This document shows positions 1,091 through 48,721 of a stretch of DNA of 64,000 nucleotides, piece after piece. The translations under genes and the position numbers were made by a program. Source of the stretch: Neoconidiobolus thromboides FSU 785 (taxonomy: Eukaryota > Fungi > Entomophthoromycota); NCBI GenBank assembly GCA_025603075.1, contig MU626336.1, positions 1 to 64,000 of the forward strand, in the 5' to 3' direction. The notes under the pieces are model-generated. The model did no database searches. It worked only from the letters and a program-made list of their open reading frames with translations, and had not been told where the DNA came from. How positions within the stretch are numbered: the first letter of the stretch is position 1; each line of letters starts with the position of its first letter.

Positions 1091-1187
1091 AGTGGTATTT
1101 TTCATTTCATCTTCTCTTACATTTTTAGGCGCTACTTGAGTGGACAAATCGTATGTAAAATCCTTAAACAAAAAAATATACCACCCC
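1091..1187 (-). mobile_element. ~98-bp MITE-like element, copy A (degenerate)
   Basis: Core GCGCTACTTGAGTGG is the reverse complement of the family core CCACTCAAATAGCGC; right end ...ATACCACCCC. Confidence 0.7.
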
Positions 1188-1233
1188 ATAGTTATTTTTA
1201 AAGAGTTTAGCTAAAATTTTCGTAGATAAATGT

Positions 1234-1332
1234 GGTGATGTTTTTTTTTGGCTTTGTCACTTTTTCCATCCTTTAAGCGCTATTTAGGCGAAAAAGCCAT
1301 TAATAAAATTATTAAACACAAAAATACGCCCC
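1234..1332 (-). mobile_element. MITE-like element, copy B
   Basis: GGTGATGTTTTTTT...AAGCGCTATTTAGGCG...AATACGCCCC; flanks ATGT/ATAT. Confidence 0.8.
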
Positions 1333-2812
1333 ATATGTTTTTCTAATAAGATCAAGTGTGGTGTTGAGATCACCAGAATTTGCCTCAAAATGGTGTAATA
1401 AATATCCAACCTAATACACTACCATGGAGTAATTTATAGTTGATACTCTATACATTTACTCGTGAGACTTGTGCTATTTTAGTTATGAAATTCATTCACT
1501 ATCTTTAAATGCCTAGGTTATTTTTTAACGAACAAATTTCTTTGATTGCTTTTACTGCTTCGCTACAAGATTCTTCTGGAGCAAAATAGTTACTCTCTAT
1601 ATAAAAATGAAGGCTAACTTATTATAACCATACAATCGGAATCAATATCAACGCTTTTGATCCAAGAAGTTGCAATTGGTGTATATATTGAATGAAACTC
1701 GTCCATTAAATCTTCACCTTGCTATTACACATTACCAGATTCCATCGCTTCTAAACAAAGTCGATATGTAGCGCCTGAAGAGCTAGCATTATAGTCATAA
1801 ATGTATTTTAGCTCTTTACATCGATTTGATTTTAGCATACCTTGAAGAATACGTACTTGTATTTAGATAGCACGTGATACAAATTAAGAATCGGTCCTAT
1901 GACCAGCGTCAAAAGATAAAGATGGTTATCAACTCTAAGTTTAATTTTTTTACTATAGGAGCGAATAGATTCTGATAAAAAATCCATTTCTAAAATTTTT
2001 CATAGTTTGGTCTTATTTCGCCTAAATTGAGATCCACTTATCCAATACAAATCTAAACGCAAATAGTTTTATACGAATTTATAATTATATATAAAGATTG
2101 ATACAAAAATGTGAACAAATTGAATTAAAGGAATGGTCCAAAAAATCCACAGAAATACTTTTATTGAGTTTGCTCATTTCAGATATTTATATGCCAGTTA
2201 ATATCTCGACTAAGATTTGTGGAATCTTTTAAGCTGAAGCAAAATTAATCTCACTATTAAACCTGAATTGTATAAACTATATATCATTAAGAGACTTCAA
2301 ACCATATTATTATCTCTGATATAGATTTAAAGCTTTTTGAGAATAAAGTCTAGTGTTTCTATAAATGAAAATGATATAAGAAAACTTCAGCTTAAATAGT
2401 TGAAAACTTTGGTAAGTTATGCATTTGCTAACTCCTATAACTATGCAAATATAAGTTAATAGTAAAGTTTAAAATCTAGTAATGTATTTGAGATATGTTC
2501 AAAACTTACAAAGTTATAACTAAGTTATCACATTGATTCCTTTTATATTTGTTTACAATCTATAGGTATTTTCTGAGTTTTGAAAATTAATTTGTCTATT
2601 TTGGAAATCTTTCAAGCTTAAAAGTTTAAGCTTTTGCAGTTTAAAATTTCTCTGTTCTAGATCAAGAAACCAACAATAGATCTATTCAAAAAATGATCAA
2701 GTAAGGGAATTTATTAAACATCTTTAACTATCTCATAAGATGGCTAGTAAATCACTTCGATAGCACTTCACATAAATATTCTGCTGAAACATTTATTTCA
2801 TTTCCTATAAAC

Positions 2813-2908
2813 GGAGCTGTTTTTTTGGTCTCATTGTTTTTCCATTTTTTAAGCGCTATTTGAGTGGAAAGATTGTAGTAAAGTTCTTGAACAAAAAAAC
2901 ACATCCCC
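2813..2908 (-). mobile_element. MITE-like element, copy C
   Basis: GGAGCTGTTTTTTT...AAGCGCTATTTGAGTGG...ACATCCCC. Confidence 0.8.
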
Positions 2909-3872
2909 ATGTACTATTTATAAAATATAATGGACGTTTTTTTAAATATAGTTTGTTTTTTAAGTATTCACGAGATAGTACTAATAAAAGCTCGAATTTC
3001 GTAGAATAACTGAAGATACTAGACGTAGGAATTAGATAAAATTCATTTCCCTAAGCCTTTCTAAAAAAGCTATAGATTTTATTGAAACTTTTATCAATGA
3101 AAAAATGTTAATACCTTTCGTTTACTTTCCTTTTAATTAGTACACTCATTATCTAATAGGTATAGTAACTTTTGAGCTATAATAGCTCTATTTTGAAACT
3201 TCAACCCTTCAAGCGAGGTAAAATAAAATTTATGGTTATGCTATTGTTGGTAGATAATTAAAAAGTGGTGAGTATTAATCCAGAATAAGATATTGGTCAT
3301 TGTAGAATAAATAAATAAAATATTTCTTATGAAAAGTAAAAAATCTTTGAATAGTGGTATAAACATAGCAAAAACTCTATTCATCTTCGTCCAAATAACC
3401 TTCCTTTTTAATTCAGCATGACTATAAAATATATTTTCAGTAAAATACTAAAATAATTTACACCAATAATATTTTTGAAGGACTTGGCGCTTTTGTCAGG
3501 AATTGGAATACCAAGATTAAAATAAAACCTAAAAAGACAATAATTATGAAAGTGTGATACCAATCATGTAATAGCCTTTTGCAGAACTGAGTTGCTGTAT
3601 TACTAATATTAATAGGCCGATTGTCCTTTGATCGAAACTAAATAAAGTAAATTATTGTATTGATAATAAAAAAATCAAGCAAGCGCGATCATTGGCTGTT
3701 CTAATCTTTGTAGTTTTTTTTATTAGAAATCCAAACTATCCGGAAATCGGTTACCATGAAATCATAATTTATTATTACAAAGCATCTATACCCCAGTGTA
3801 TATTAATTGAGGACAAAAATGAAAATTTTATTTACTTTCTTTTTGATTGAATAATCCTATAGTTTAATAAAA

Positions 3873-5285
3873 ATGAATGAAGTTTCAAAGCCATCAAATA
3901 CCATAGTTATGGATGAAAAGATAGAGGATAGCAAACTAGAATTAGGTAGTACTGCTGAAGAAAATTCAGTACAATATTCAAAATTCCGCAGGAGTATTAT
4001 ACTCTTAGTTATTGCCTTTGCCGCTATTTTAGCACCATTATCCTCAACAATTTATTTTCCAAGTCTTGGGGAAATAAGAGAAGAACTTGTAACAACGGAC
4101 TTATTAGTCGATATATCCATTTCTGTTTATATGCTTACATTAGGCCTTGCACCATTAGTTTGGGGTGGAATGGCAGACAGATTTGGTAGAAAAGGTGTAT
4201 TTTTAGTTACCCAGGTTATATTTACAATTGGAAATATTGGTTGTGCTTTATCTAACAGTATAGGACTTTTGATAGCAATGAGAATAATTCAAGGTATAGG
4301 TGCATCTGCTCCTATTGTAACTGGTATAGGCACAATTACTGATATTTTCCCAAGACAAGAGCAAGGCTTTGCAATGTCAGTATTTTTTGTAGGTCCATTA
4401 GTAGGGCCAGTAATAGGACCAATTATTGGTGGCTTCTTGTTTGATGCTTTTGGTTGGAGATCTACTTTTTGGACTTTAACCATTTTAGGAGGAATTCTTT
4501 TAGTTGCATCTGTCTTTTTACTACCAGAAACTCTGGCAAAATCAGCTAAACAAGAATTTCCGATAAAAATAACTTTAAAACCTTTAAGGATTCGCAAAGG
4601 TGGTAAAATGTTTAACCCGCTTTCACCATTGGGATTTTTAAGATTTCCTATTGTTGTTATACCTTGTATTTGCATTGCTATCACTTTTGGAACTTTTTTT
4701 GCAGTGGAATCTTCCATGTCAAGAGTTTTCCCATCTACTTATAATTTAACTGCATCTCAATCTGGATTAACTTTTATACCATTGGGCGTAGGTAGTATTT
4801 TAGGAAATCTTCTTGGTGGAAAGATATGTGATAGATCATTTCGAAGATTCAAAGCTAAGAATAATGGTAACGATCCTAGACCAGAAGTCCGATTTTATGG
4901 TTTATGGTCAGGATCCTTAATTGAAGCAGCTGGTTTATTAATGACAGCTTGGTTCGTCACATATCAATTCCCATTAGCAGCCTCTTTAACAGCAGGGTTT
5001 TTAATTGGATTTGGAAATACAATGTCGATTATCTCTTGTTCAAGCTATCTTGTTGATAACTTCCCAGATTATGCTAGCTCGATTGCAGCTTGCTTTAGTG
5101 CATTTGAAATGGTAATTACTGCTATAATTACTGCTATAAATGCCCTTATATTAGATGGCTTGGGTTACGGGGGAGGTATTACATTGTATGCCTGCCTTGT
5201 TTTATGTGTTACTATAACTATATTTTTGATGTATTATAAGGGAGAAAGTATTAGAAAAAGATTTGGTCCATATAATTCAGCTTAA
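3873..5285 (+). CDS. MFS drug:H+ antiporter (DHA1 family), intronless
   Basis: 470-aa ORF with about 12 hydrophobic segments, motif A (GGMADRFGRK), motif C (GPLVGPVIGPIIGG) and the PEVR motif. Confidence 0.93.
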   Translation: MNEVSKPSNTIVMDEKIEDSKLELGSTAEENSVQYSKFRRSIILLVIAFAAILAPLSSTIYFPSLGEIREELVTTDLLVDISISVYMLTLGLAPLVWGGMADRFGRKGVFLVTQVIFTIGNIGCALSNSIGLLIAMRIIQGIGASAPIVTGIGTITDIFPRQEQGFAMSVFFVGPLVGPVIGPIIGGFLFDAFGWRSTFWTLTILGGILLVASVFLLPETLAKSAKQEFPIKITLKPLRIRKGGKMFNPLSPLGFLRFPIVVIPCICIAITFGTFFAVESSMSRVFPSTYNLTASQSGLTFIPLGVGSILGNLLGGKICDRSFRRFKAKNNGNDPRPEVRFYGLWSGSLIEAAGLLMTAWFVTYQFPLAASLTAGFLIGFGNTMSIISCSSYLVDNFPDYASSIAACFSAFEMVITAIITAINALILDGLGYGGGITLYACLVLCVTITIFLMYYKGESIRKRFGPYNSA

Positions 5286-5868: not shown

Positions 5869-7443
5869 TTAATTATTAGGACCAAATCTATTTCTAAGGT
5901 AAACCCCTTTATAAATTAAGCTAATTAGAGTTAAACAAACAATAAAACACATAGCAGCCCAAAAAGTAAATGCCCAACCAAAACTGATAGCTTCAATTAA
6001 TGGAGTATTAATAGCGGTAACAATGGCTGTAAATATTAATTCGACACAAGAATAACAAGCTGCAATTGAAGAAGCATAATTTGGAAAGATATCGACCAAA
6101 TAATTACTAAGTCCAATTAAACTAGATGTATTTCCAATACCAACGATCATATTACCCACTAAGGTTGCCCATAAATTAAATTTATATTCTAAAAACCAAC
6201 CATATAACAAATGACCAGCTAAAATTATAAGTGATCCAATCCATAATAAATGTAATCGAACTTCAGGTTGCGGTGTTCCTTTTTTTTCTGCTCTTCTATA
6301 TGTTAAATCTGATATCCTTCCAGCTACTAAATTACCAAGTATGGAACCAATTCCTAAAGCAACAAATGTGAGCCCTACTTGAGACGAATTCAATTCATAA
6401 ATCGTAGCCATAGCTCTAGATTGTGATGATTCCACAGCAAAAAAAGAACCAAATACCAAAGAGATACAAAATACAGCAAGTATAACTACTGGGTATTTTA
6501 AAAATCCTAATGGGAAAAGTGGATTAAAAATAGGCCCATCTCTTTTAATTGAAAATGGGCTCAATGTAAATTTATATGGCGGTTTTTGAAACGATGCCAA
6601 TGGTAAGGTTTCTTTCAATAAAAATAGGGAACTTATTAATAAAATTCCTCCTAATATAGCTAGAGTCCAAAAGCAAGACCTCCAGCCTAAATATTGATTT
6701 AGAAATCCACCTATGATAGGACCTAAATTATTGAAATTATATTAATAATACACTCGAACATCTTTGATGATTCACTTACCTATCACTGGACCAACTAAAG
6801 GACCAAGGAAAAAAATAGACAAAGCTGAGCCACGCTCATTTCTTGGATATAAATCAGTGATAGTACCCACCCCAGTAACAATGGGAGCAGAAGAACCAAT
6901 GCCTTGGATCATTCTTAATACGATTAGAGCATTTATATTTGTTGATAAAGCACAACCAATATTACCACAAGTATAAATCACTTGAGATATTATATAAACA
7001 TTACGACGCCCATAGCGATCAGATAAACCTCCCCATATCAATGGCTAATTGATGAAAAAAACAGGGTCAATGTAATTAAAGTGGTATTCCAATATAAAAC
7101 TTACAAATAATCCTAAACAAAGCATGAATACAGAGATGGTAGCGTCTACTAAAGAAGCTGTTGTATTTAACTCCTCTTTAATTACTTCAAGGGAAGGAAA
7201 CTAATTAAATTTAGAACTTTTAAATTGGAATTAATTAATTGAAATTACATAAATGGTTGAAGATAAAGGCGATAAGATGGCTGAAACAGATACTAAAATT
7301 AGCATCAAACTACGTCTTAATTTACTAAACCTTTTGTATTGCTCTTCTTCAGCAGTTTCTTCACAAGTTATTTTTGGCTCTAATCCCCAATCTTCTAACT
7401 CTTTCATGCTCATTTGATCTTTATCCATTTGATCTTTATCCAT
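5869..7443 (-). CDS. MFS drug:H+ antiporter (DHA1 family), 4 exons
   Basis: ORF pieces 7231-7443, 6772-7041 and 5869-6618 join through three GT-AG introns (STIY|FPSL, LGLF|PLIWGG, PVIG|PIIGG); motif GGLSDRYGRR. Confidence 0.9.
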
Positions 7444-8478
7444 TTCTATTATTATTAATATGCTTGATTTTCAAATTAATAAAAAAACAAAAAAAATAAA
7501 ATTCATCAACTTTCAAGTTTATTAAGAACAAGAACCTTAAGGTTTTAATAGAATCGAATTTTTTTAAATTTCATCAATTTTTTCGGAGATTGCGCGTACT
7601 ATCCGCTTTCATGAGATTCAAACTATCCTTAATTTGGTTAAGGAGGGGTGCTAATCTCAATGTTTAGCCAGAAAATTTAAAAATTTCTAGTTGCAATTTA
7701 ATTATTAATTTTACTAAATCTATTTTTAACTAAAAATATTATTTGCTTACGATTCGCAATTTATTTTGATTGGCTAAGTATTAAGTTCTCGACTGAAGTT
7801 AATAAATTTTATAGTTTTATAAGAATTGAATTTTAATGAGCATTAATATATATACTATTAAAAAATAACATAAATAGATCGAAGTTTGCCCCGAGGTTCA
7901 ATTATTTTCCGAGTTATTGGAAATAGTTGATTGTTTTAGCATTGAATCTTATAAGTAATATTTTTTTGCTGATATTATGAATTAGTGCTATAAATTATAT
8001 AAGAATTTTTCATAAACGTTTGTAACTTATGCTATACCAATTTTTCTTTTAGCAAGTGTCAATATATACAAAGTTTCTTCGTAATACTAAATTGGGTTTA
8101 AAAAACTTCAGGTAAGTCATTTGCAATTAGTTTTATAAACTTTAATATATGGCAAATTGTTTTTTTAACATCTAAAAAATTATTAAAAGTTTCTAAAAAA
8201 ACTTCTATTTAAAAGGAAATTATGAGGTAAATAGTTTTAAAAAATTTCAGGGTGCTCTTTCTATTTTCATATAGAAAGTTGGACTTTTTTAATGATACAA
8301 CTTTCCTTGCCCCTCACCTGGTTTTACAACACCTTTATCTCTTTTTATTTTTTCTTTCATAAATAAATATATAGAGATTGTTTAGCTGACTCTTCTAAAA
8401 TCCAAAAAAACGTGTTATTATAAATTATTTGTTAATATATAAAGAATAAACTTAATCTACCTTTAAAAATCCTAATAT

Positions 8479-8574
8479 GAAGGATGTTTTTGGTTTTAGC
8501 CTTTTTTCCGTTTTTAAGTGCAAATTGCGAGAAAAAATTATTAGTGAAATTATTAAACAAAAAAATATATCTCC
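8479..8574 (-). mobile_element. MITE-like element, copy D
   Basis: GAAGGATGTTTTTGG...ATATCTCC flanked by ATAT/ATAT. Confidence 0.75.
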
Positions 8575-8756
8575 ATATTTTGCCTATTATCTTGAAAATA
8601 AGAAAGATCATTATTTTTTTCATTAGTTTCATTGATACAATTACTACTTTTAATAGGTTTATAAGGATTTTCACTTATCTCAACATTTTGGATAACCCAA
8701 TTTATAAATAATTTCTATATAATTGGTAACATTTATAAAGCAAGCAATAAGTATAT

Positions 8757-8854
8757 GGGGATGTATTTTTGTGTCTAGGAATTTTGCTGACAATTTTTCC
8801 ACTCAAATAGCGCTTGGAAGGTGAAAAAAGTAATGAAGCTAAAAAAACATCCAC
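8757..8854 (+). mobile_element. MITE-like element, copy E
   Basis: GGGGATGTATTTTTG...CCACTCAAATAGCGCTT...AAAAAACATCCAC flanked by ATAT/ATAT. Confidence 0.85.
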
Positions 8855-9699
8855 ATATAATTTTTATGAATAATGCTATCAAATAAGCTTTTAACTATTT
8901 CTTTACATATAGGATCATTGCTTTCCCGAGCTACTATACAAGTTACATTAGAAGTTGTGAGTCCTTGTAGTGTGAAGTTACAAAAGCACGCATACCCTTT
9001 TTTCAATGTTTTTCTAGTACTAGTTGATTTTCCAAAACCTTCAATTGTACAACCAAAGTTATAAGATATTAATCATGGTTTTTCAACTATTAAACTTAAA
9101 ATTACAGCTGTTGTTAAAAACTTTGTTATTTTCATCTTCGTGTTTTTTCTTAGTATTTCTAATAAACGATATTGCTGCCTTTTATACTACTTTATATTAT
9201 TTGCACTTTGTAGTTCTACAAACTTGAATACTTGACATCTACTTTAAAATTCAATATAGAAGTTTTGATATAGGTTTTACTCAATTTGATGGAATTTTTC
9301 TATACTTTTTCTTTGAATGATCGCAAAATAATAAGATAATTTAAATACAAATTTAATAAAGTTCATAGCATTTTAGTTTATAAGCTAAATAAAGATACAG
9401 ATAATTAATTAATTTATATCCGTCTTGTATTTACACTATCACACTAGAAGCGCCTATTGTTGATACTTTATAATAAAATAGGTATATATTTGAAATTGGT
9501 TTATAGAAGGAAAAATGCAATTGTTTAGTGCATTTTTTATCATTTTACCTTATATATTAGTATTAATACTAACCTTTATTTATATTTATATTTATATTTA
9601 TTGTTCTATAGTAAGTACTTTGTATATGCTAGTTTAACCCAAGGTTCGATTATTTTTAGAGTTGATTATTATTAGTATAGTAAGCATAAGGGCTGTGAA

Positions 9700-10652: not shown

Positions 10653-10750
10653 GGGGATGTATTTTAGGTTTAAGAATTTTACTAATAAAATTTCCACTCA
10701 AATAGTGTTTAAAAGATAGAAAAAGTGATGAAGCCAAAAAAAACATTCCC
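10653..10750 (+). mobile_element. MITE-like element, copy F
   Basis: GGGGATGTATTTT...CCACTCAAATAGTG...AAAACATTCCC; flanks ACAT/ATAT. Confidence 0.85.
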
Positions 10751-11197: not shown

Positions 11198-12702
11198 ATG
11201 AGTCTCAAAAAACCTAAATCCGAATCTCCGCCACCTATGGGCAGTTTATTATTAAAACTAGTGTTAAAGAAACCAACTTATTGTTTAGTTGTTATAGCTG
11301 CTTTTTTATCTTTATTAAAAGGTTATTTTTTTATGGTCAATTACAAGCCCCCAGATCGTGGATTAGTTTATTCTAAATTAAAAATGCAATCAATTCAAAT
11401 TAAAGAAAGCGGTAAGTAAAATAGCTTTATAGAATATTATTATAGCTATTGTATAAAATGGTTTATTAATAATAATTATTTCTGTTAGGTAGTAATTCAA
11501 TAATATATATTGGTTCAACGCCAAAACCGATTCCGAGGAATTTTGAAGTATTAGTTAAGGTAAAAACATATACTAATCATTTATTAGTAATATTAATATT
11601 ATATTAGGTTAAAGCGTTTGGTATTAATAGATTAGATTTATTACAAAGGGAAGGTAAATTTCGACAAAGTAATATTGGCAGTAATATTATGGGGATTGAG
11701 GTTGCTGGTACAGTAACAGAAGTAGGCGAAGATGGTAATAATAATATATATATACAACAAATAAATAAAATATTAATATTAATATTAATATTAATTCTTA
11801 TTTTATTTTAGTAAAAAACATCAAAATTGGAGATAGAGTCTGTGGTTTAGTCTATGGGGGAGGGTATTCCGAAGTAAGTATTATCCCAATTTGTTTATTT
11901 AATATTTAATATTTAATTCTTTTATTTATTTATCTTTATTATTATAGTATGCAGTTATCCATAGTAAATTAACATTTAAATTACCTAATAGTTTATCGTT
12001 TGAACAAGGGGCTGCTATACCCGAGGTAATTATTATTTCTAATTTGTATTTTATAATATTAATTATTTTACTATTATTTATTAGTCGTATTTAAGTAGTT
12101 ATTATATATTAAAAAAAATTGGTCAAATAGCTCCTGGAAAAAACATATTAATCAATGGAGTGGGAGATGGAATGGAAGATTCCATAATTCAATTATCTAA
12201 ATATTATAAAAGTAATAAGATTATAATAGTTTGTAATAGTTATGATAAGATCAAACATTATGAAAAGATGGGAGCATCAAAAGGAATTAATTATGAAAAA
12301 GAAAGTAATTTATTAGATAAGATACAAAAGAGCGGAATTAAAGGGATTGATTTAATAGTTGATAATTTGGGGACCAATTTGTTTTATGAAAATTTAAAAA
12401 CATTAAGCAAAAATGGAATTTATGTTTTATTAAATAGCAATCTATCTGAAGATATTCAATTAGATTTAAACTATTTATTAAAGAATAGTTTAAGTTTAAT
12501 TTCATTTCAATTATTTAATAATGAATCTGATAAATTATTTTTATTAGCTGAAGAATTTAAAAAAGAAATATTACCTAATTTAGATAATAAATTAATTAAA
12601 ATTCATATTGACAAAGCATTTAATTGGATTGAAATGGAAGATGCTCATCAATATTTATCTTCAAATTCAAATTTAGGTAAAGTTATTGGTGTTATTGACT
12701 AA
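11198..12702 (+). CDS. PIG3/zeta-crystallin-type NADPH:quinone oxidoreductase (MDR superfamily), multi-exon, with hydrophobic N-terminal extension
   Basis: Spliced exons give EVLVK|VKAFGINRLDLLQREG, GIEVAGTVTEVG, GDRVCGLVYGGGYSE|YAV, SFEQGAAIPE and a C-terminal HQYLSSNSNLGKVI. Confidence 0.82.
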
Positions 12703-20580: not shown

Positions 20581-21540
20581 ATTATTTATGGTTTATCTTG
20601 GTTGATTAAGCTGTTTTGAAAAGTATGTTGTTAATTCTAAATATATATTATGTGAAATCATTATTAATTACATTTCTTTTTTAAATTAACTTATGACTAT
20701 GATACTAATGTAATTATATAGCGTACATATGGTATTATGGTAATTATGAAGTTTTTTGTCGATAGCAATTTTATATTTTATGACAGCTTAGAGTTAGTTT
20801 TTCATTTAAATTTTGTATACCTATTAAATACATCTTTAAGTGTTACAAGGTTTAATTCTATTAAGATAAATATATTTAACATTATCCCAATTGATAACTT
20901 GGAAATTGTTTTGAAGTTTCTTAGGCTAAAGGTAGAATTAAAGTATTTATCAATAGAATAGAGAAACAAGAGATGAAAGGGAAAAAGTGGAGACTGGGAT
21001 GTCTCAACACAGAATTAATAATAATAATGAAAAAGTGTTTTTAAATATGACCTTTCGAAATAAAGGTATAGGCCTAAAGAAAGGTTTTTTGAATTGTAGT
21101 TAAGAAAGAGTTATGTATAAACAAAGTAGTTGTATCTTAAAAAGGGAAAAAAATGAGATAATAAATTTTAAAGTTAACATTAGGTGGGAGTACCATCAAC
21201 GTAGAAGATATAGTAGTGAAATAACATTAGTTAAAGTTAATTATATTTAATAAAATAGATGTAGTTTATTGATTTATAAGTGATTTTAATTTGTGTCAAT
21301 ATGGGTTGTTTCAGTACGTTACTTTATGTACTTGTGCCCTTTTTTAAAAGTTAGAAGTTAAAATTAAATGCATTTAAATATATATAATAAATACATACTT
21401 TACCATTAATTTTGTTGATTTCTTATTAAATTGAATATACCAAAACAATGTATATGATTAATAAAAAGCAAAAAGTAAACTTAGTCACTTTGAAGGGTGA
21501 GTTGTCTAAACAATTTTAGTTAAATTCAAGCTATGAATTA

Positions 21541-22060
21541 AAAATGATTTGCCACTACACATAAGGGTATCATTTATATCAGCTTGAAAGTAGGGAGAGT
21601 CCCTATTGCCTTTTTTTTGTAGTTTTACTGGTAGTGTCGTAAGCTTCGGTACAAGAATTTTTACCAATTTTTAAACAAGTAGTGTAATGGAGGTATAAAC
21701 AGTTTCTGAGTAAGTGATAATAGTTAAAAACCTAGTAGAAAGCGTATAGTTTCTATATACGAACCTATCAAATGAGCCCTTAACTAGATTGTTTTCTTTT
21801 TACATGTTGTAGCATCACTATTTTCAGATACTGTATAAGTTATATTAGTGATAAATTTGAAAGGCTCCCCTTTAAAAGTGCATGAATATTCATATCCTTC
21901 TTTTAGTTTTCCTGGTACTAGTTAGTTTCTCGAAATCTTCAGCTGTACAATCTAAAGAATCATTCTTTATTGAAGATGGTTTTCCACCTACTAAACTTAA
22001 AACTACAATTGATATTTATAAAGATAGTATAAAGGCTTTTAACTTTTAAAAATATCAAAA
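21541..22060 (-). pseudogene. Decayed small secreted-type Cys-containing protein gene, copy 1
   Basis: Frameshifted reading ISIVVLSLVGG-KPSSIKNDSLDCTAEDF...LKEGYEYSCTF...ITNITYTVSENSDATTCK...CLYLHYTTC...KGNRDSPYF, colinear with copy 2. Confidence 0.55.
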
Positions 22061-23374
22061 CATTCAATATGAACGTACTGTTATTATTATTCACATTTAA
22101 TAATTCCTCCCTTTTGGAACTTAGGGTCTTTGTTAAATACTTGGAAGAGACTTTATTATTTTATATGTAGAATAACAGTTCATCTTTATTATTTCTCTTA
22201 ATGATCTCCAAAATAATTAATATAATTTTAATCAAGTTTATGTGGGTTAGTTTAAAAACTTGGTTCAATTTTTATTGAGTTTAGATTTTTAGTAAAAATT
22301 GGGAATTGAATATAAGGAGGTGCCATAAAATTGGTTGCTTTTTGTTATGAGAACGTTTTTTTGGCCAATATTTTATCTATAAAATTTAAAATTTACGCTA
22401 CAGAAAATGGACAAAAATATAAAATGTGAAATCTTTCTAATTAACTAAGCTTTTTAAACTTATCTATATTTAATATTTCTTATGAAATAAGGTCTAAAAG
22501 TAGTTTATCCTATATGTAAAGGCTCTAGATATGATTTTGAAAACTGTGTAATATAAAGTCTTTTATTTTATAAATTGAATCTATAGTATTATTTTAACTT
22601 TTATATATCATGTAGTTTTTATCACACATTTTAAATTTGTTCCGCAATATGAATATTTAGTAGCTAATTGAGTTTTTCAATGTTTTGGAAAAACTTTTGG
22701 GCAAACCATACCTTTGGGCATTTGTAATACTAGCTGGTCTTTTAGCGATATATTCTTACTCATTGAAACTATTACTAACTGAATTAAATGTGAATTGGAT
22801 ATTTCTAATTTTCTACTTGCTGGCTAAGACTGCTTTTTGTAAAATAACAACCATCTTTAGATTTAAGTTATTTTCATTAATTATTTACCTCTTTATCATT
22901 TCCTTACCACACTTCAAACATTTCTTCACAAGTCATTTGTGAGTTTTTCAACTCTTTCATGACTATTTAAAATAGCTTTTAGATAAACATTAATATACCT
23001 AAGTTATTCAGTACACAAATAGATGATGATGATAATTTATAAGCAATTTAAGAACAACCTTTGATGATGCGGAAAGAGATTTATTGTGACTATGTTTAAA
23101 TAAAAGGAACAGAGTGGATTAATTTATAAATAACAATAATACAAACTAATATACAGCTGCTTTAGCGATTTTGTATTTACTCTCTAGACTTTGGTGCTAG
23201 ACAAAGTCATGCTTATGTAACATATATATATCTACTATCAGTTTTATTGTTTTACTTCTTACTAAACTAGGCAGATCAAAATAACATATATGATCAATGA
23301 AAAATAGAAAGATAACTTAATCATTTGAAAGGATGAGCTATCTGGGTACTTTTAATAAATTCAAGCTATAAAAA

Positions 23375-24555: not shown

Positions 24556-24653
24556 GGGGATATATTTTTTGTATTTGATAATTTTACTACAACCTTTCCA
24601 CTCAAATAGCACTTAAGAAATGGAAAAATAACGAAATAAAAAAAAACATTCCC
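24556..24653 (+). mobile_element. MITE-like element, copy G
   Basis: GGGGATATATTTTTT...CCACTCAAATAGCAC...AAAACATTCCC; flanks ATAT/ATAT. Confidence 0.85.
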
Positions 24654-24922
24654 ATATATTAAAAAGTTCTAATTTAAATATGCTTTTTTAAGAAAAAAGA
24701 CAGCTTATACTGTCTAGAGGTTTAAGAGATCGTATGAAGAGATGTTAGTCTTGCAATTTTTACTATATGGGTATGCCTTTCTTGTTTAAGAGTTGTATTA
24801 AAAAACATTTCTGTATAATAGCCCTTAAAAAATCATAATTATATGAAACTAAAAAGATACCTCTATATATTATAATTCTTGCAAAATGAATTTGATTTAC
24901 TAAAGATTACTCAAGTTTATTT

Positions 24923-27905: not shown

Positions 27906-28000
27906 GGGGATGTTTTTGATTTCATTACTTTTTCCATTTTTTAAGCGCTATTCGAGTGGAAAAATTGTCAGTAAAATTCTCAAACAAAAAATACATTCTC
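27906..28000 (-). mobile_element. MITE-like element, copy I
   Basis: GGGGATGTTTTTG...AAGCGCTATTCGAGTGG...ATACATTCTC; flanks ATAT/ATAT. Confidence 0.85.
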
Positions 28001-31599: not shown

Positions 31600-32373
31600 T
31601 TTTATCTCTTAAAGAATAGATATTTTTAGCGAATTTAAAAATAGGTAAATAAGCGGGCCTACATACATCAAATTAAAAACAAGTGCTAGCTTTTGACTTA
31701 ATGAAACACAGCCTGGTAAAAAAAACCTAATCCAGAACCAGCAAAAAATTGATTAATTTACAAAGCAGCAACATATTTTTGAAACTTCGGTCTATAACCT
31801 AAAACAGTAAAAGAATAGTATAAGTAGATTACTGTATGAACAAGGGAGCTAAATAGTACAAAAATTCCAGTACCTGGATTGGAGATGGTAAATAGATAAA
31901 ATATACATAAAACTGCACCAGAATGATGGTGAGATTGTAAAAGAGATGGTACTCTATTTTTTAACAATAAAATTAAGGCATTAATAAATTCCCAATATTT
32001 GGATAGATAAAAGAGCCATATATTAAGGTATATGCTTTGTATTCATACCGTTTGATTTTTATCAAAATAGACGTTATAGAGGGAATCACTATTTATAATA
32101 GTGCCATAGATGGTAGAAAATAAGGAGAAAAGGGGAAAAAGGAACAAATTGCTAAGTTAAGTTATGAAATAATATAAAGACCTTGAAACCATCACTAGTT
32201 TTTGTATTTTTAGTTGTTTGCTTTTTTATATACTCAGTGTAAATCTTTGCAGCTATCAAATATGTGATTGATATAAAGGCAACACTGGGTTGACGGTTAA
32301 AACAAGGGTACCATTATGAGAGTGGTAAGCCTTGTCAATGAGTTATATCAATAAGATTGGAAATTGGAATCAT
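31600..32373 (-). pseudogene. Pseudogene of the ELO fatty-acid elongase at 49732-50526
   Basis: Colinear with the intact gene from the start (THxQGLPLSxWYP) through LSKYWEFI, PSLLQSHHHSGA, GYRPKFQKY and SQKLALVFNL; at least 4 premature stops plus frameshifts. Confidence 0.85.
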
Positions 32374-40712: not shown

Positions 40713-43700
40713 TTAACTAGCTTTACGAATCCTAAGATTACGCTTTGAAGAAATAGTAGTAGTAGTAATAGGTTCTACCTCAGTACTAAAATCATATTTA
40801 ACTCGATTTAAACGTCGAAGATTTCCTCTACTTTCAATTAATTGAGTATCATTTAATGTAGTTGATTTAAAATAACTAGAAATAATATGAATTATTATGA
40901 TGTAAATTATAATTATAATAATATTATTACTTTTTGATATTTCTTTTCTTTTTTAAATTGTTGTTTTTATTATTATTATTTGATTTCTTTTTATTTTTAG
41001 ATTCTTCTGAATAACTTTCCTATTAAAGTAAATTAGTATAATATAAAATAGTATATAAAATATATTTACAGCTTGGTCATCAAATATACTTTTATCAACA
41101 TATTTAATCTTTCTTTTTGGTATATAGACAATCGCATTACACTCTTTAGGAAATTTAAGATAATGATAATGACAATCAATAGTATCGTTATCTTTTGACA
41201 ATTCTAAATGAATTGAGCATTTTTCTTTTCTTTGCAGTCCATTGAAACAAAAACTTGGATCATCAGGATAATCATTTTTATCAATAATTAATGTCATTAA
41301 ATAATCTTCAATTGATTTTAGCCAAATATAAAATTGCTGTAATGTTTTAAATATAGTTTTGACTTCTGTCTTATTTATTTCTTCGTTGTATGCTTGAATT
41401 ATTTGTTTATAAGGATACGATTCTTTAGTCCAACTTAAAAGTATTTTATGATTTTGTTTAATTACTTTTTGATATTTAGTTAATTTACCAATCATTTTTT
41501 TACTCTCTTTTAAATTAGGTATACTATATTCAAATATATTATAACAACTTATAATTGATTCACTGAGTGATTTTAGTAAATCAATTTCTTGAATGATTTT
41601 ATTACCGAGTTCAATTGTTTCGTTTGATTTCATTAAAATAATTGAAAAATCATAAAGCAATGCTTTGATGTTTTTTAATTTATATATTATTTTATTCATG
41701 TAAATCTTATTGTATGCTTCAAAGTCTTTAATTTCAATTAATTCGTTACAATTATTAATTGATGCATTTTTTAATAATTCATTAAATGAAATTGGTGCTT
41801 TTATAAATGGTAAAATGGATTTTGAATATAATTCATTTGACTGTTCTGTATCCTCACGTATAAATGAAGCATAAGATGAAAAAGCATAAATAATATAAGT
41901 AAGCATTGTTTCTTTTGAATCAATGGCACTTTTAATGCCTAATTGAATTTCTTTCCATCGATTGAAAGTATCAAATGAATTGATAATATCCTGTTTATTG
42001 AATTTTATGTTTGTATATAATTCTTTTTCTCTTATGCCATCTTGATTTAAACTAGATAATAGCTGATTTAAAGACTCTTCGTCATTAACGCATTTCCATA
42101 CTGTTTTGTTTAATTCTCCTTCTTTATTGCCATCTGTCTCTTTATTATCAATATTGGTCTGTTCATTATTGATCTTGGTTTGTTCATTATTGATCTTAGT
42201 TTCTTCAGTAATATTGTTGGCTTCTTTACTGTCATTAATCATTTCTTCGTTATTTTCTTTAGATCCTTCAGTAATAACATTAATTTTTTTAGCAATGATA
42301 TTAGTTTCTTTATTATTAATATTTATTTCCTCGATGACAATATTAGTTTCCTCTTTATTAACATTGATTCCTTTGGAAACAACATTAACTTCTTCTTTAT
42401 CAATACTAGCTTCTCCATTATTAATCTCAATTACTTTTTTTACCATATAAGCTTCCATACTTTCGATTATAATACCACCCATATTTGCCCAATACCAATA
42501 TAATTTTCCAAATCGATCTTTGCCTAACAAAAGTGATCCAACTTTATTTAATACACCATTGTGTTGACCATGTAATTCTGCCACTTCAGATGAAGTATAA
42601 GTTTCATTAATCACTGCTTCCAAGTCTTTTGTATTTTTTTCAATATGAAATCTTAACATTTCAATATTCTTATCTACTCTATTAATTTCACTTTCTAATG
42701 CAACTATTTGTGCTTTAAGTAATGGTAATGGTGTATTATAATGTTGGATTGTAAATATTCTTAATGTTTCGATATGTTTATTCCTTAATGAAATTTCTGA
42801 ATTTAAGCTAATTTTCAAAGAGTCAACGTTTGTACTAATATCCCTAATTTTCTGCTCAAATGATGGTGTATAGGCAATTTGACATTCTATAAAAGTACCA
42901 AATGCAGGTTCATCATATATATTGTTCACAATTGCCTTTAATACTATTAATTTTTCAGCTGGAGTCCATTGAGTGATCTCTTTATCAAAAATATCTACGG
43001 TAACTTTAGAGCTTTTTCCTTTTTTAATTTCATTTATTGCTTCAGAAAAATCAATAGTTTTACTACTATTCCTTGGATCTCTAAAAGTTATCAATATTTG
43101 TGTCAACTCTATAACAAGAAAATGGTAATAGATAGAATAATAATCTAATGGGATATGTAGAATCAAGATCAAAAAATCAGGGGACGAAATAGTTAATGGC
43201 CAACCGCTTATTATTTTAGTCACAAATAATCTTAAGAAGTCAGCAACCTCTAAAACATCAAGTACCTTTTTAAATCCTAAAAAGGTATCTGTTCCTTCAA
43301 TTAATTCATTATCTAATGGATTGGCTTCAAATAGCTTTCTTGATTTATTTAAAACCTCTGGATCTAAATCATCAAGTATCTCTATCTTATTAACCTATGA
43401 AATTATTAAAAAACATTCCGAGTAATTTATACTACATACCAATTGACTGTATTTTATATTATGAGGAAGGATAGTTTCATAGGCTACATCTGTGTTCATC
43501 ATGGCCTGGTTATTTTTTACATTTATATTCGTCATGATTTGATTGTCTTGTACATTTGTGTTCATTATAGTCTGATTGCTTTGAGTAATTGTATTCATCG
43601 TAATTTGATTGATTTGTGCATTTGAAGGGGAGACAAATTTCTCAACCATACTCACATTGGATTGGATTTGAAAATTGGAAGTATAATTTGAAGGATAATT

Positions 43701-44073
43701 TGCTTTTTTGCCTTTCTTATTAGGATTTGATTCGATTAAAGAATTGATTTTGTATGGACTGGGTTTATATGAGTTTGGGGTTACAACTTCAAACTTTACT
43801 ACAATATTAATTTTAGAATCTTCTAACTTAATTATAGAGCCTTATATGATAAATAAGGAAGTTCATCATATTAGCTTTAGTATTATATTTACTTGTATTC
43901 AATTTGCCAAATTCGTTCTGTTGCGCATTTTGAGTATCATCAGTTAAATCTATTACCTCGTTTTTAGAATTCATTTTTTCAACATGGTTGTAAAGCTTTG
44001 TTTTTAGCAAGCCATCCTGATTTGACCTAGTATTAACCTGATCTTCATTTTTTTTAAGTGCAGATAATTTCAT
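40713..44073 (-). CDS. DDT/WHIM(WSD)-domain chromatin protein (ISWI partner, Ioc3/Itc1-like), multi-exon
   Basis: LEVADFLRLF (DDT-like), WTPAEKLIVLKAIV (WHIM1-like), LGKDRFGKLYW (WHIM2), WKCVNDEESLNQLLSSLNQDGIREKEL (WHIM3); exons join in frame through GT-AG introns. Confidence 0.75.
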
Positions 44074-44543
44074 TTTGAGAAGTTTTTGTTGACGAGCCTT
44101 TACAAATCTTTTTATAACAGTCAGGTTTTGAATAGAATTAACATTGTTATCATTTATGTCTAGATTAAAATTATGTCAGTTTATTTAATATATTTTGTTA
44201 TGTAGTTGCATTATACAACCAGTCCGTTTGATTTACCTTCAATTTTATTTGGCTCTGACATTTTGATATAATGGTTCTTTAAAAACTTTCAGTTTGTAAA
44301 ATATTATCTACGAATCAAGAATCCTTAATTTTAGCTAAAAAGAGTTACCAATTTTGAAATACCGAATTTTGAAATTTCCCTAATTTCTACTAGAAATTCC
44401 TAAATTGGAAGGAACGTTGTAAATTTTTAGCTTAATTCATGATTTAAACAACTTGAAATGGTGATTTTTAGCATCTTACTTTTGATGTATTATTTTTAAT
44501 AAAAACTGATAGAAAGCAAGAAAAATTAAAAGCAAAAGTATTT

Positions 44544-44641
44544 AGGGCTGTATTTTTTTGTTTAAGAACTTTGTTAACAATCTTTCTACTCAAATAGCGC
44601 TTAAAAAATGAGAAAGTAATAAAATCAAAAAAAACATCCCC
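44544..44641 (+). mobile_element. MITE-like element, copy J
   Basis: AGGGCTGTATTTTT...ACTCAAATAGCGCTT...AAAACATCCCC; flanks ATTT/ATTT. Confidence 0.85.
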
Positions 44642-45710
44642 ATTTATAGTTTCCTTGAAACTAAATGTCACAAGCCTTACCTTTTTGATGAATCTTTTTA
44701 CCTATTTGACGCATATTTTACTATGGCTAAATTTTTTAATGAAAGCTATAACAATATAAACTATACTAATTATTTTAATGTGTAAATATAAAAAATTTAG
44801 AACTTAACCTTCTAAATTTGGTTACATCAGGTTTCCCACTTTTTATTAAAATACAGTGAAATAATCCAAATAGCACACTCAATAAACCTTAAAATGGAGA
44901 ATTTTTTGAATTTGAGGAGTTGAGAAAGGATATCATTAAGTAAGCTTTATACCACCTTTCATATAAAGGTAAGGTAAATATGTTAGTTTGTTGTAAATTA
45001 TGGAACAAAACAATACCATCAATGCTATGAGAAGACATAGCCCCATATCATGATCATTATTATAGAAAAAAGTGTACGGTAGTTGTAAAAAATATGGACA
45101 TTATATTGAATGTTTGATATTAAAACACATTTGGAGCTACCAACTTACCTTTGGGTATATCCAAATAATACCAAACTTTATTCGTTTTTAGATGAATATT
45201 TTAAGAATGTAAGTTGTTTTGAAAATACTTAGATACTAGGCCTTTGGCATACTAATTGTATAAATGGTATGACAGATGAGGAATACATGGATAAAAATGA
45301 AATCCGTATCAAGGAATTATTCCAAAGTTTAGAACATCTAGGGCTTGATGATTTAAATTATTATTTTGCAACGTCGATTTTACCAAATTTATCATCAAAT
45401 TTGAATTTATTGATAATCAACGATATTTTTGATATTGAAGTTACTTGTTTTGAAGATTCATTAAATAAGTAGACGATTTGAGAAAGCTTCATATAATTTA
45501 TCTTGAACTCAAATTAGAAGATATGAGTTTCTTCTTAAACAAATCTTTTCCGCAATTGAATATATTGGATATGGGGAGTTTGGTTGTAGATGTTTCGGAG
45601 AATGAAGTTGTAGATTATGAATATATATAAATTTAAATAACTATTCAAACCTAACGAAACTCTATTATCAAGAATATCCTATTTTAGGATTCAATAAGGT
45701 ATCAAAGTTA

Positions 45711-45746
45711 AAAGAGTTAAAAGAGTTAAAAGAGTTAAAAGAGTTA
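45711..45746 (+). repeat. 9-bp tandem repeat (AAAGAGTTA)4, in-frame (LKE)n expansion
   Basis: Read directly; corresponds to the single LKEL of the intact paralogue. Confidence 0.9.
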
Positions 45747-46074
45747 ACATTGATGGGAGCTGACCTACTAGATGTGACTATAAATAAGGAGGTGTTTCCG
45801 GAATTAAACCAGCTAAATCAATTAAAGCTACACTGTTCTTTCAACTTTTCATTAAAACATTTATGTTTATATTTATTGTCAACGATCAGATATTTATCTA
45901 TTTATGTATAACCCTTTAATATTCCTAATCAAGGGAGTTTGTCTAAAAAATAATACAAATATAGTTGTTTTAAAACTAACAATCTTACTGGATGTTGGTT
46001 CTTTTGATTATATATATCGTATCGTATGCTGTATAACCTTGAAATGATAAATTGTGAATTCAAAGGCAACATAT

Positions 46075-46171
46075 GGGGATGTATTTTTGTGTTTAAGAAT
46101 TTTACTAACAATTTTTCCGCTAAATAGTGTTCGAAAATGGAAAAAATAATGAAGTCAAAAAAAACACTCCC
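46075..46171 (+). mobile_element. MITE-like element, copy K, inserted in the F-box pseudogene
   Basis: GGGGATGTATTTTTG...AAAACACTCCC; flanks ATAT/ATAT; the intact paralogue has a single ATAT at the homologous site. Confidence 0.9.
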
Positions 46172-46721
46172 ATATCACGTTTAAATCATAAAGTACCAAA
46201 GGATTCTAGTTTAACGAATATAAATATTGATTTTTATAACCGACCAAATTTATATGGTTTTATTGATTGTATTTTCAAATATTTTCAAATATAAAAATAT
46301 TTAATTATTAAATATAGATAGATATGTGATAAATTATGTGAATGATCCCAGGTTTTATTTTAAATAAAGTTGATATCTCAGTTTAATATATTATATTAAA
46401 ACTTATATCAACCTTTTGTAAATTATATGTATAATAATGGTTATAATACTGATGTTATTGAAAACATATACCAATTTCTAATAAAATCTCAATTTTTTAT
46501 AGTATTTACCTTTGTTTATTCTAAATAAACTACTTAGGAGCTGATTGGCCCTTTGGATATTTTATAATGTTGCGTAATGCTTTATGGATCAATGAATGTC
46601 ATTAAACTTGATTTTATGGAATGTCACTATTTAATCTCACAAACACGAAAATAACAATATTTGAATTAAACAAAAACTATCTTGTATTAATTGGATTTTT
46701 ATAGTTCCAACGAACCTTATA

Positions 46722-48032
46722 ATGAAGAGGCTACTAAAACTTGAGGGCTTAGAAAATGATGTACTCAGAGAAATTTTATGTCACCTTTCATCTAAAGATA
46801 AAGTTAAATTACTTTTATGCTGTAAAAGATGGAATAGAGTACTACTACCACTATTATGGGAAAATATGACTCCGAGCTACAGTTATTATTATAGGAAGCA
46901 GATGTATACTAGTTTTAGAAAATACGGTCATTATATTAAATATTTGGATCTCAAAACATTTGTAAATTTACCAATCCACTCTTCAGTTTATCCAAATTGT
47001 AACAAGCTTTATTTATCTTTAGACAATTATTTAAAAAACAAAATCCATTTTGAAAGTAGTCAGCTAACAGGTCTTTACTATACTAATTTTATTGACGATA
47101 TGAAAACAGAGGACTATATACTTAAGAATAAGATTTGTATAGAAAAGATATTCCAAAATCTAAAGTATTTTAAAATTCATAACTTAAGTATATATTTCAA
47201 AATATCAATCATACCATTATTACCATCAAATCTAAGCTCATTAGTAATCACTGACAGCTATGATAGTAGAGTGCCATATTTTGAATTCATGATAAATAAG
47301 TTCGATAATTTAAAGGTGCTTAAGTTAATTAATATTGAGCTTGGATTTAGGGATTTTATTTGTTTTCTAAATAAATCATTTCCTGAATTAGATAGGTTAC
47401 ATATGGAAGATATAATTGTTGAAGATTTGGAAGATTTAGAACAAATGTGTATAAATTTAAATAACTACCCAAAGCTAATGACACTCTACTACCAAGGAAG
47501 TTATATGTTATTATTTAATGGTACATCAAATTTAAAAGAACTGGTACTAAGTGCAGTTAGCTTAGAAAATACGGCTATAAATAAAGAGAAATTTCCAAAG
47601 TTGAATCAATTAACTTTGAATTATTGTGTCGATATTTCATCAAAGCAATTCTATTTGATATTTAACATGTCAACGATTACCTATTTAAACTTATTAATGT
47701 ACAATCATTTAGTGCTTTTAATTAAAGAAATTTACCCAAAAAATAACACAAATATAATTTCACTAAAAATTGTTAACCCTGTTTTAGATGCCAATTTCTT
47801 TAATTTTTTATATACATCATGCCCTATCCTATGTAACCTTGAAATAATAGACTGTGAATTTAAAAATGACATATCATTTTCAGATCATAAAATAATAAGG
47901 TATACTAATTTGACAAACGTAATAGTTAAGTTTTATAGTTATCCAATTGTAAATAGTTTTATTAACTATGCTTTAAAACATTTTAAAAATATTAAAATGT
48001 TTAGAATTTCAAATATAAGTAAAAGTGTATAA
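46722..48032 (+). CDS. F-box protein with degenerate LRR/RNI-like repeats, intronless
   Basis: LENDVLREILCHLSSKDKVKLLLCCKRWNRVLLPLLW (F-box), then repeated LKVLKL, LDRLHM, LKELVL, LNQLTL. Confidence 0.85.
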   Translation: MKRLLKLEGLENDVLREILCHLSSKDKVKLLLCCKRWNRVLLPLLWENMTPSYSYYYRKQMYTSFRKYGHYIKYLDLKTFVNLPIHSSVYPNCNKLYLSLDNYLKNKIHFESSQLTGLYYTNFIDDMKTEDYILKNKICIEKIFQNLKYFKIHNLSIYFKISIIPLLPSNLSSLVITDSYDSRVPYFEFMINKFDNLKVLKLINIELGFRDFICFLNKSFPELDRLHMEDIIVEDLEDLEQMCINLNNYPKLMTLYYQGSYMLLFNGTSNLKELVLSAVSLENTAINKEKFPKLNQLTLNYCVDISSKQFYLIFNMSTITYLNLLMYNHLVLLIKEIYPKNNTNIISLKIVNPVLDANFFNFLYTSCPILCNLEIIDCEFKNDISFSDHKIIRYTNLTNVIVKFYSYPIVNSFINYALKHFKNIKMFRISNISKSV

Positions 48033-48325
48033 ACTGTTTAAATGGTTCTGATGTTATTTATAATAAAGATATCTTTAATTAATTTTCTAGTTTTTGATTT
48101 TTTTCGGAAGCTTTGCTAAGAATCTATTTTAAAAGTAACTGTAGTATTGATCTTGTTACAAAATTCACTATTATTTTTGATAGCTAACCTTTAAACAATA
48201 GTTTCTGTGACCTAACATCACAAATGTATTGAATATCTCTAATATAAAATTTAGAATTGCTAAATTAAAAACTATTTTCTATTATTCCTCATTATTTATT
48301 AAATTATCAATAATTTTTATAAAAT

Positions 48326-48423
48326 GGGGGTGTATTTTTGTGTTTAAAGATTTTACCAACAATTTTTCTACTCAAATAGTGCTTAAAAGATAGAAAAAGC
48401 AATGAACCCAAAAAAACATCCTT
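48326..48423 (+). mobile_element. MITE-like element, copy L
   Basis: GGGGGTGTATTTTTG...ACTCAAATAGTGCTT...AAAACATCCTT; flanks AAAT/AAAT. Confidence 0.85.
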
Positions 48424-48625
48424 AAATATTTGTATAGATTGAAATACTATGTAGTAAATATTAAAGCATATTTATCATATTATTACCAGCTAGTTATTAA
48501 GGGTGTTAGCATAATATATCAAAATGCCTTTTTTATCTATTGCTCACTTCTTGATAAAGTTGGAAGCCATTGTTGAAAAGGTATCTCTCTATCATGAAAG
48601 ATTAAGAAATATCTGAGAAATATAT

Positions 48626-48721
48626 GCGGATGTATCTTTATATAAGAGTTTTACTAGCAACTTTTCCACTTAAATAGCGCTTAAAAGATAGAAAAACAAT
48701 GAAGCCAAAAAAAACATTCTC
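48626..48721 (+). mobile_element. MITE-like element, copy M
   Basis: GCGGATGTATC...CCACTTAAATAGCGCTT...AAAACATTCTC; flanks ATAT/ATAT. Confidence 0.85.

Follow-up and report, generated by a model that had tools for sequence, protein, structure and literature searches.

Among described DNA transposons, the closest counterparts of the repeat family presented here are the Sola2-type elements. In Dictyostelium fasciculatum these have terminal inverted repeats (TIRs) of 12-13 bp and AT-rich 4-bp target site duplications (TSDs) of the form AWWT, and the TSDs of the Polysphondylium elements are ATAT, AAAT and ATTT (PMC3627910, Bao and Jurka 2013). The TIR sequences themselves vary across the published Sola2 families (PMC3627910, supplement 11). 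Sola2 is already listed as a class of miniature inverted-repeat elements (MITEs) for insects in iMITEdb (PMC5199201). In fungi, a large survey of ~1,700 genomes, which did not include Neoconidiobolus thromboides, found Sola2 in a single case, Aspergillus flavus, and Pfam holds no Sola model (PMC5751038). The published repeat analysis of N. thromboides makes no mention of Sola or of MITEs (PMC11105155).

Here we describe an abundant family of non-coding elements in N. thromboides FSU 785 which, judged by its TSD and TIR signature, is most likely a member of Sola2, one of the groups within the Sola superfamily. The window analysed, meaning the whole stretch of DNA under study, comprises 64 kb of contig MU626336.1 (GCA_025603075.1). 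An nhmmer profile built from seven seed copies, of the kind proposed in the preliminary description of this DNA, was run on the window and recovered 13 clear copies (E from 1e-11 to 8e-29), as well as a degenerate 14th (E = 3e-4). The 13 dispersed copies in both orientations that had been described from inspection were all found again at the coordinates given, and their lengths, described as mostly 95-99 bp with one copy of 85 bp, held up: the 85-bp copy aside, they measure 94-99 bp. The copies, with the bases flanking them on the left and right and their nhmmer E values, are as follows.

1092-1185, minus strand: MITE of 94 bp, eroded, 70% identical to the consensus; flanks CTAT/TTAT; E = 7.6e-13; intergenic, downstream of the gene at 19-573.
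1234-1332, minus strand: MITE of 99 bp; flanks ATAT/ACAT, alike at 3 of 4 bases; E = 1.3e-17.
2813-2908, minus strand: MITE of 96 bp with degenerate 3' end and right flank; E = 1.3e-22; ~960 bp upstream of the MFS gene at 3873-5285.
8480-8574, minus strand: MITE of ~95 bp, eroded; ATAT/ATAT after a 1-base alignment correction; E = 3.6e-12; pairs with the following copy in inverted orientation.
8757-8854, plus strand: MITE of 98 bp; TSD ATAT/ATAT; E = 7.7e-29.
10653-10750, plus strand: MITE of 98 bp; flanks ACAT/ATAT, alike at 3 of 4 bases; E = 4.5e-25; ~450 bp upstream of the gene at 11198-12702.
24556-24653, plus strand: MITE of 98 bp; TSD ATAT/ATAT; E = 1.4e-22; the first of three copies inside 450 bp.
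24769-24866, plus strand: degenerate 14th MITE, outside the earlier count; flanks ATAT/ATAT; E = 2.9e-4, together with alignment.
24923-25007, plus strand: shortened MITE of 85 bp with an internal deletion near its 5' end; TSD ATTT/ATTT; E = 1.6e-11.
27906-28000, minus strand: MITE of 95 bp; TSD ATAT/ATAT; E = 1e-21; flanked by two convergent genes according to the gene calls.
44544-44641, plus strand: MITE of 98 bp; TSD ATTT/ATTT, direct and not inverted; E = 5.7e-26; ~470 bp upstream of the WSD-domain gene at 40713-44073.
46075-46171, plus strand: MITE of 97 bp; TSD ATAT at 46071-46074 and 46172-46175.
48326-48423, plus strand: MITE of 98 bp; TSD AAAT/AAAT, direct; E = 1e-26; within the annotated terminal intron or 3' flank of an F-box gene.
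48626-48721, plus strand: MITE of 96 bp; TSD ATAT/ATAT; E = 1.7e-25.

The window copies lie in intergenic DNA close to gene ends, and none of the 14 falls within a credible coding exon. In one annotated gene model of the window, two copies are spanned by a single annotated intron. Pairwise identity among the window copies averages 75% (range 59-86%). The terminal motif GGGGATGTWTTTT, allowing at most one mismatch, matched the window 12 times, against 0.35 matches expected from shuffled sequence. The consensus, ~97-98 bp in length and devoid of coding capacity, has GGGGATGTATTTTT at one end and AAAAAACATCCCC at the other, with an asymmetric core, TTTCCACTCAAATAGCGCTTAAAA, that is well conserved among copies. 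The TIRs measure 13-14 bp and are imperfect, with one indel (GGGGATGT(A)TTTTT versus AAAAA(A)ACATCCCC).

The 4-bp duplication is perfect in nine window copies as aligned and in a tenth after a 1-base correction; three further copies agree at three of four bases and the remaining one is degenerate. By type, the perfect duplications are ATAT in seven copies (eight after the 1-base correction), ATTT in two and AAAT in one, and ATAT is the dominant flank also for the copies on other contigs. In three window copies the duplications are non-palindromic (ATTT/ATTT in two, AAAT/AAAT in one) and repeated directly, not inverted; the flanking bases are therefore duplicated target sequence and do not prolong the TIRs. 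An alternative parse, in which only two bases (WW) are duplicated, the element begins with T and ends with A, and the target context is strictly A..T, would be the same string of bases as a 4-bp AWWT duplication and indistinguishable from it by sequence. The copies are true MITEs, non-autonomous class II elements, and at 85-99 bp lie far below the ~800 bp that bounds this class: the shared TIRs, asymmetric core, absence of an ORF and AWWT duplication reported at the outset all reappeared in the consensus and alignments.

Several traits are shared with described Sola2 families. DFa-1/2/3 of D. fasciculatum and PPa-1/4/5 of Polysphondylium pallidum carry the same AWWT duplications, ATAT, AAAT and ATTT (PMC3627910), and the 4-bp AT-rich AWWT form characteristic of Sola2 is what the window copies carry. 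Published Sola2 TIRs span 12-21 bp (12-13 and 21 bp in the described families), the 13-14 bp found here falling between, and both begin with G and end with C (PMC3627910). When the DFa 5' end, GAGCATTTATTTCT, is compared by eye with the MITE end GGGGATGTATTTTT, 10 of 14 bases agree, which is a resemblance and not a test; because TIRs are unconserved across the published Sola2 families, the termini cannot confirm membership. In contrast to the multi-kilobase published elements, which encode a transposase of ~890 aa and in some cases Fanzor1 as well, the family here is a 97-bp non-coding element in a zoopagomycete fungus. The insect Sola2 MITEs are likewise short, non-coding and bounded by TIRs, and were assigned by TSD and TIR traits (PMC5199201); they belong to another kingdom. 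The preliminary description had inferred that the elements are the non-autonomous partner of an unusual or undescribed DNA transposon lineage. This inference is not supported: AWWT duplications with short TIRs are the published Sola2 description (PMC3627910), and a Sola2 MITE class already exists in iMITEdb (PMC5199201). On this signature, the family is probably a new fungal member of a transposon kind that is already known. Sola-like enzymes had been among the transposases that the preliminary description itself proposed checking.

The familiar MITE-bearing superfamilies fit less well. Stowaway (Tc1/mariner) and Tourist (PIF/Harbinger) elements resemble the family in being ~100 bp long, numerous and non-coding, and in lying near genes at AT-rich targets, but duplicate TA (2 bp) and TWA (3 bp), respectively, whereas here the duplication is AWWT and the inserted length 97 + 4 bp. 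A 3-bp PIF/Harbinger duplication of TWA is contradicted by the four duplicated bases and by an allelic gap of 101 bp for a 97-bp element between its GGGG and CCC ends. The non-autonomous elements of piggyBac and Kolobok also have a 4-bp AT-only duplication, but their target is TTAA, and a TTAA duplication was found in 0 of 39 copies. For hAT, with its 8-bp duplication, the bases outside the 4-bp duplication differ between the two sides. With Tc1/mariner, considered below, these results bear out the earlier statement that the elements match none of Tc1/mariner, PIF/Harbinger, hAT and piggyBac.

In total, 39 copies were examined in 129 kb, the 14 of the window plus 25 found on contigs MU626262.1, MU626288.1 and MU626286.1, of which 64.8 kb was examined, and the density of the family is about one copy per 3-5 kb. 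Between ~6,800 and 9,400 Logan contigs per DNA run match four query copies at ≥90%, and the depth summed over the 46075 copy is ~7,700-7,900 times the single-copy depth in three runs. Copies thus number in the thousands genome-wide, as the preliminary description had extrapolated from the window. The sequences flanking the copies are unrelated to one another, the agreement of the loose-end consensus (0.47) being at the random level. Tandem dimers, head to tail with a 4-bp ATAT spacer, also occur: a joint from 46175 back to 46071 is present in 14-29 contigs per run, and two more lie at 401-586 and 3622-3821 of locus L010.

The clearest view of an insertion comes from the copy at 46075-46171, which tblastn places in a decayed F-box pseudogene. 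Pairwise alignment with an intact F-box gene identified a paralogous empty target site at 47870-47878 on the plus strand, GA-CATAT-CA, where a single CATAT (at ~47874) is homologous to the insertion point; this paralogue is diverged. An allelic empty site was found as well. A contig of DNA run X3 (record 10) and one of run X4 (record 17) connect 46069 with 46171, omitting exactly 101 bp (97 + 4), and the empty allele is reconstructed as AAGGCAA-CATAT-CACG. In run X1 the contigs enter the element from both sides, so that the copy is present in both the window and X1. The isolates polymorphic for this copy differ by less than 1%. Its absence from two other isolates suggests that the family moved recently, although in principle there may have been no new insertion and the X3/X4 lineage may instead have lost the copy precisely, whether the transposase excised it or the TSDs recombined with each other. 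The earlier picture of an old, large burst is therefore only partly retained: the copies are indeed diverged (mean identity 75%), but divergence is not proof of a solely old burst when one copy is polymorphic between isolates.

Were the family mobilised as a Sola2 element, a DDD transposase of Sola2 type, encoded at another genomic locus, would bind the MITE TIRs in trans, excise the element and, cutting the target with a 4-bp stagger, reinsert it at AWWT sites. Each insertion would recreate ATAT on both sides, allowing new copies to land beside old ones, and this would account for the head-to-tail dimers and their ATAT spacer. What defines Sola2 is a DDD transposase of its clade that carries the same termini. 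Long elements or solo termini of an autonomous partner were sought in 129 kb, made up of the window and four other loci, and only one truncated MITE was found. A 725-aa gene in locus L009 that has no Pfam domain was considered as a transposase and rejected, its product being instead a Ser/Thr- and Cys-rich protein of secreted type. All-versus-all blastn of the 129 kb for other repeats returned nothing beyond MITE pairs, F-box paralogues and a small number of duplicated genes, and a search for the exact gene product of two window ORFs found none. A metagenome scan for the conserved MITE core gave 0 matches, and one for the two termini with a gap gave five, all in GC-richer unrelated contigs and none fitting the family profile.

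Of the alternatives to Sola2, the one that fares best is mobilisation by another cut-and-paste lineage, either an undescribed superfamily or an AWWT-preferring member of Sola1, Sola3, Ginger or Academ, which have 4-bp TSDs. The 129 kb examined held no transposase, the unconserved Sola2 TIRs give no help in deciding membership (PMC3627910), and Sola2 is nearly absent from surveyed fungi, with its one case (PMC5751038). However, AWWT in the same three variants, combined with short TIRs, is precisely how Sola2 has been described, and the fungal survey left out N. thromboides; we consider another lineage unlikely. Far less probable is a Stowaway-like MITE of the Tc1/mariner/pogo type, with ends TGGGG...CCCCA and a 2-bp TA duplication. 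Read as A-TA-[T...A]-TA-T, the ATAT flanks permit this parse, which is also consistent with both empty sites, but Tc1/mariner needs TA, and in three of ~12 informative copies the central bases co-vary on the two sides as TT/TT (twice) or AA/AA (once). The outer A and T would, moreover, have to be just as strictly required in the target while being part of neither the element nor the duplication. Barely credible is a host sequence, either a regulatory module or a gene for a small structured RNA, that segmental duplication has copied around the genome: the copies do sit between genes near gene ends, keep a well conserved core and occur in contigs of an RNA library, but they stand in both orientations amid unrelated flanks, one is inside a pseudogene, and the precise presence or absence of a copy with its target duplication at one locus refutes this reading for origin and spread. 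Rfam models had 0 matches in the window at the gathering score, a tRNA scan of the window found none, and single-strand folding of four copies gave only the TIR stem (z-scores between -0.1 and -1.1); since folding shows nothing past that stem, the structured-RNA reading was dropped. Some copies may still have a secondary host function.

Returning to the Sola2 assignment, it is possible, if rather doubtful, that N. thromboides retains an active Sola2 system whose MITEs are moving within the species, as the 46075 copy suggests. A weaker suggestion, given the resembling Sola2 termini, is that the fungus may have acquired the family horizontally from soil-dwelling amoebae, dictyostelids for example. 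We know of no Sola2 element with an experimental transposition system. Were the N. thromboides system active, a working Sola2 transposase would be implied in a fungus that can be cultured and whose genome is small. With thousands of copies beside genes in a compact genome of ~25 Mb, the family matters for annotation of N. thromboides, and it gives rise to differences among isolates, both regulatory and of presence or absence. It does not represent a new kind of system; it provides a lead for finding an active Sola2 transposase.

A profile search of the window (nhmmer, seeded with seven copies of the MITE family) recovered 13 copies at E = 1e-11 to 8e-29, together with a 14th, degenerate copy at E = 3e-4. 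Boundaries were set by glocal alignment to the family consensus, and the two approaches together bore out the preliminary description in its coordinates, count, size range, orientations, termini and core motif. The terminal motif, allowing at most one mismatch, was counted 12 times in the window, where shuffles predict 0.35, and the family was also retrieved by a direct-repeat search. Identity of the window copies to the consensus ranges from 70 to 93%, with a mean of 75% between copies.

MITE copies in the window, with boundaries from glocal alignment to the family consensus
1092-1185, minus strand, MITE copy
1234-1332, minus strand, MITE copy
2813-2908, minus strand, MITE copy
8480-8574, minus strand, MITE copy
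8757-8854, plus strand, MITE copy
10653-10750, plus strand, MITE copy
24556-24653, plus strand, MITE copy
24769-24866, plus strand, degenerate MITE copy
24923-25007, plus strand, MITE copy of 85 bp
27906-28000, minus strand, MITE copy
44544-44641, plus strand, MITE copy
46075-46171, plus strand, MITE copy
48326-48423, plus strand, MITE copy
48626-48721, plus strand, MITE copy

At 8480-8854, two inverted copies with 182 bp between them make up a composite fold-back some 375 bp long, which could be mobilised as a single longer element.

The ends form an imperfect terminal inverted repeat (TIR) of 13-14 bp, GGGGATGT(A)TTTTT versus AAAAA(A)ACATCCCC, and the four bases flanking them are usually ATAT. 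Since ATAT is palindromic, it could represent either an extension of the TIR or a target-site duplication (TSD). However, three window copies have non-palindromic flanks, ATTT/ATTT twice and AAAT/AAAT once; these are direct repeats, whereas a TIR would pair ATTT with AAAT, so that the flanks are a 4-bp AWWT target duplication, as confirmed by two empty sites. A formal ambiguity lies in the alternative parse as a 2-bp WW duplication, with element ends T...A in a strict A..T context, which gives a sequence identical to that of the 4-bp AWWT duplication.

Both empty sites correspond to the copy at 46075-46171, which is inserted in a decayed F-box pseudogene. The first is paralogous: the pseudogene has an intact F-box paralogue at 46722-48032 (64% identical), in which the homologous position carries one CATAT and lacks the element. 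The second is allelic: contigs from two DNA sequencing runs of N. thromboides (X3 record 10 and X4 record 17), which differ from the window at <1% of sites, join 46069 to 46171, skipping 101 bp that comprise the 97-bp MITE and one ATAT. Contigs of a further DNA run, X1, enter the same MITE from both sides. This copy is therefore a presence/absence polymorphism within N. thromboides. Because the diverged paralogue is also empty, the empty state is likely ancestral, and the simplest reading is a recent insertion; the other lineage may instead have lost the element precisely. The copy at 46075-46171 is only 89% identical to the consensus, so that divergence among copies does not date the last movement of a cut-and-paste element. 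The old burst proposed from that divergence is thus at best part of the story.

The absence of a fit to the classical superfamilies, pointed out previously, held. A TA duplication of the Tc1/mariner kind is ruled out by the co-varying TT and AA centres, TTAA (piggyBac and Kolobok) is found in 0 of 39 copies, and the duplication is neither the 3 bp of PIF/Harbinger nor the 8 bp of hAT. Scans of the window detected no Rfam family and no tRNA-like part in the element, and folding of the MITE gave nothing past the terminal stem.

The further claim that the signature matches nothing described has to be abandoned, as AWWT duplications with short TIRs match Sola2, a transposon group of the Sola superfamily. 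For Sola2-type elements of Dictyostelium fasciculatum, Bao and Jurka (2013, PMC3627910) give TIRs of 12-13 bp and "AT-rich 4-bp TSDs (AWWT)"; for those of Polysphondylium pallidum they list "ATAT, AAAT, ATTT", stated to fit the Sola2 family and the same three variants as in the N. thromboides MITE. The published DFa 5' end, GAGCATTTATTTCT, agrees with the MITE end at 10/14 positions, a resemblance only, since TIRs vary among Sola2 families. The insect database iMITEdb likewise counts Sola2 among the superfamilies in its MITE classification (PMC5199201). Judged by its TSD and TIR signature, the family is probably a Sola2-type MITE.

The defining feature of Sola2 is a DDD transposase; in 129 kb (the window plus four fetched loci) neither a long element nor a solo terminus was found. 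Pfam has been described as lacking a Sola model (PMC5751038). The TIRs, the 4-bp AWWT duplication, one precise presence/absence locus, thousands of dispersed copies and dimers with a 4-bp ATAT spacer are established here. In the proposed mechanism, a Sola2-type transposase, encoded elsewhere, would bind the TIRs and cut the MITE out, with reinsertion at AWWT through a 4-bp stagger.

Four more loci of the same genome, fetched through F-box paralogues (64.8 kb on MU626262.1, MU626288.1 and MU626286.1), contain 25 more copies, whose termini are the same and whose flanks are mostly ATAT; among them are head-to-tail dimers with a 4-bp ATAT spacer. At 90% likeness, 6,800-9,400 contigs per DNA run match four window copies in the whole-run contig sets, and summed depth over the 46075 copy, not itself a copy number, is ~7,700-7,900 times single-copy depth in three runs. 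The latter agrees with a density estimate of 5,000-8,000 copies (a MITE every ~3-5 kb, genome size ~25 Mb), and the earlier projection of thousands genome-wide is supported. Some run contigs show one copy directly followed by another (joint 46175 back to 46071), the pattern predicted if ATAT, regenerated at each insertion, is also a favoured target. Two dimers near the end of MU626288.1 (locus L010, 401-586 and 3622-3821) share 84% identity across 186 bp, and two spaced copies at window 1098-1336 resemble a pair at 4007-4238 of the MU626262.1 locus (L009); dimers may be copied or moved as units. In run X5, an RNA library, contigs matched to window 44000-49000 include MITE sequence with a high summed depth, and nearly half of them continue into unrelated flanks. 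Many transcripts therefore probably contain MITEs, in UTRs or through read-through, with DNA carry-over an alternative source.

The window has 24-32% G+C, and all 14 copies lie outside credible coding exons when compared with the deposited gene calls: 11 are intergenic, typically 0.4-1 kb off a gene end, one is within the F-box pseudogene, and two fall within the final intron that the deposited model gives the neighbouring F-box gene. In that model (P0001, 434 aa), a splice joins 47921 to a final exon at 48893-48997, and the two MITEs fall in the intervening intron (47922-48892). The uninterrupted ORF ends at 48032 with a tail that the pseudogene preserves, and the RNA contig over the gene stops at 47858; the model's final exon may reflect an annotation artefact, or else an alternative form. 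Several stops and frameshifts interrupt the pseudogene (44920-46290), a decayed tandem paralogue that retains ~37-45% protein-level identity to the gene and contains a deposited 112-aa "gene" (45110-45472). Three of the four fetched F-box paralogues are at most a few kb from contig ends (MU626262.1 1-12137 and the ends of MU626288.1 and MU626286.1), amid more F-box fragments and dense MITEs (~1 per 2.4 kb), a setting that may be a subtelomeric gene-family neighbourhood. Other window duplications comprise the ELO (fatty-acid elongase) gene region, repeated in inverted orientation (49759-50492 versus 31626-32346, 68% identical, 18 kb apart), MFS transporter sequence (1-566 repeating 4698-5263, 77%) and the pair 21381-21949 and 23214-23782 (66%).

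The largest fungal survey reported Sola2 in 1 of ~1,700 genomes (PMC5751038), and a comparative repeat analysis including N. thromboides gave 13.5% repeats and mentioned neither Sola nor MITEs (PMC11105155). Our literature search found no link between Conidiobolus and MITEs. The kind of element, probably a Sola2-type MITE, is known; the host is new, and the density of the family and the evidence of recent mobility add somewhat to its significance. That the system is currently active in N. thromboides we regard as rather unlikely; if it is, it would provide a tractable Sola2 transposition system.
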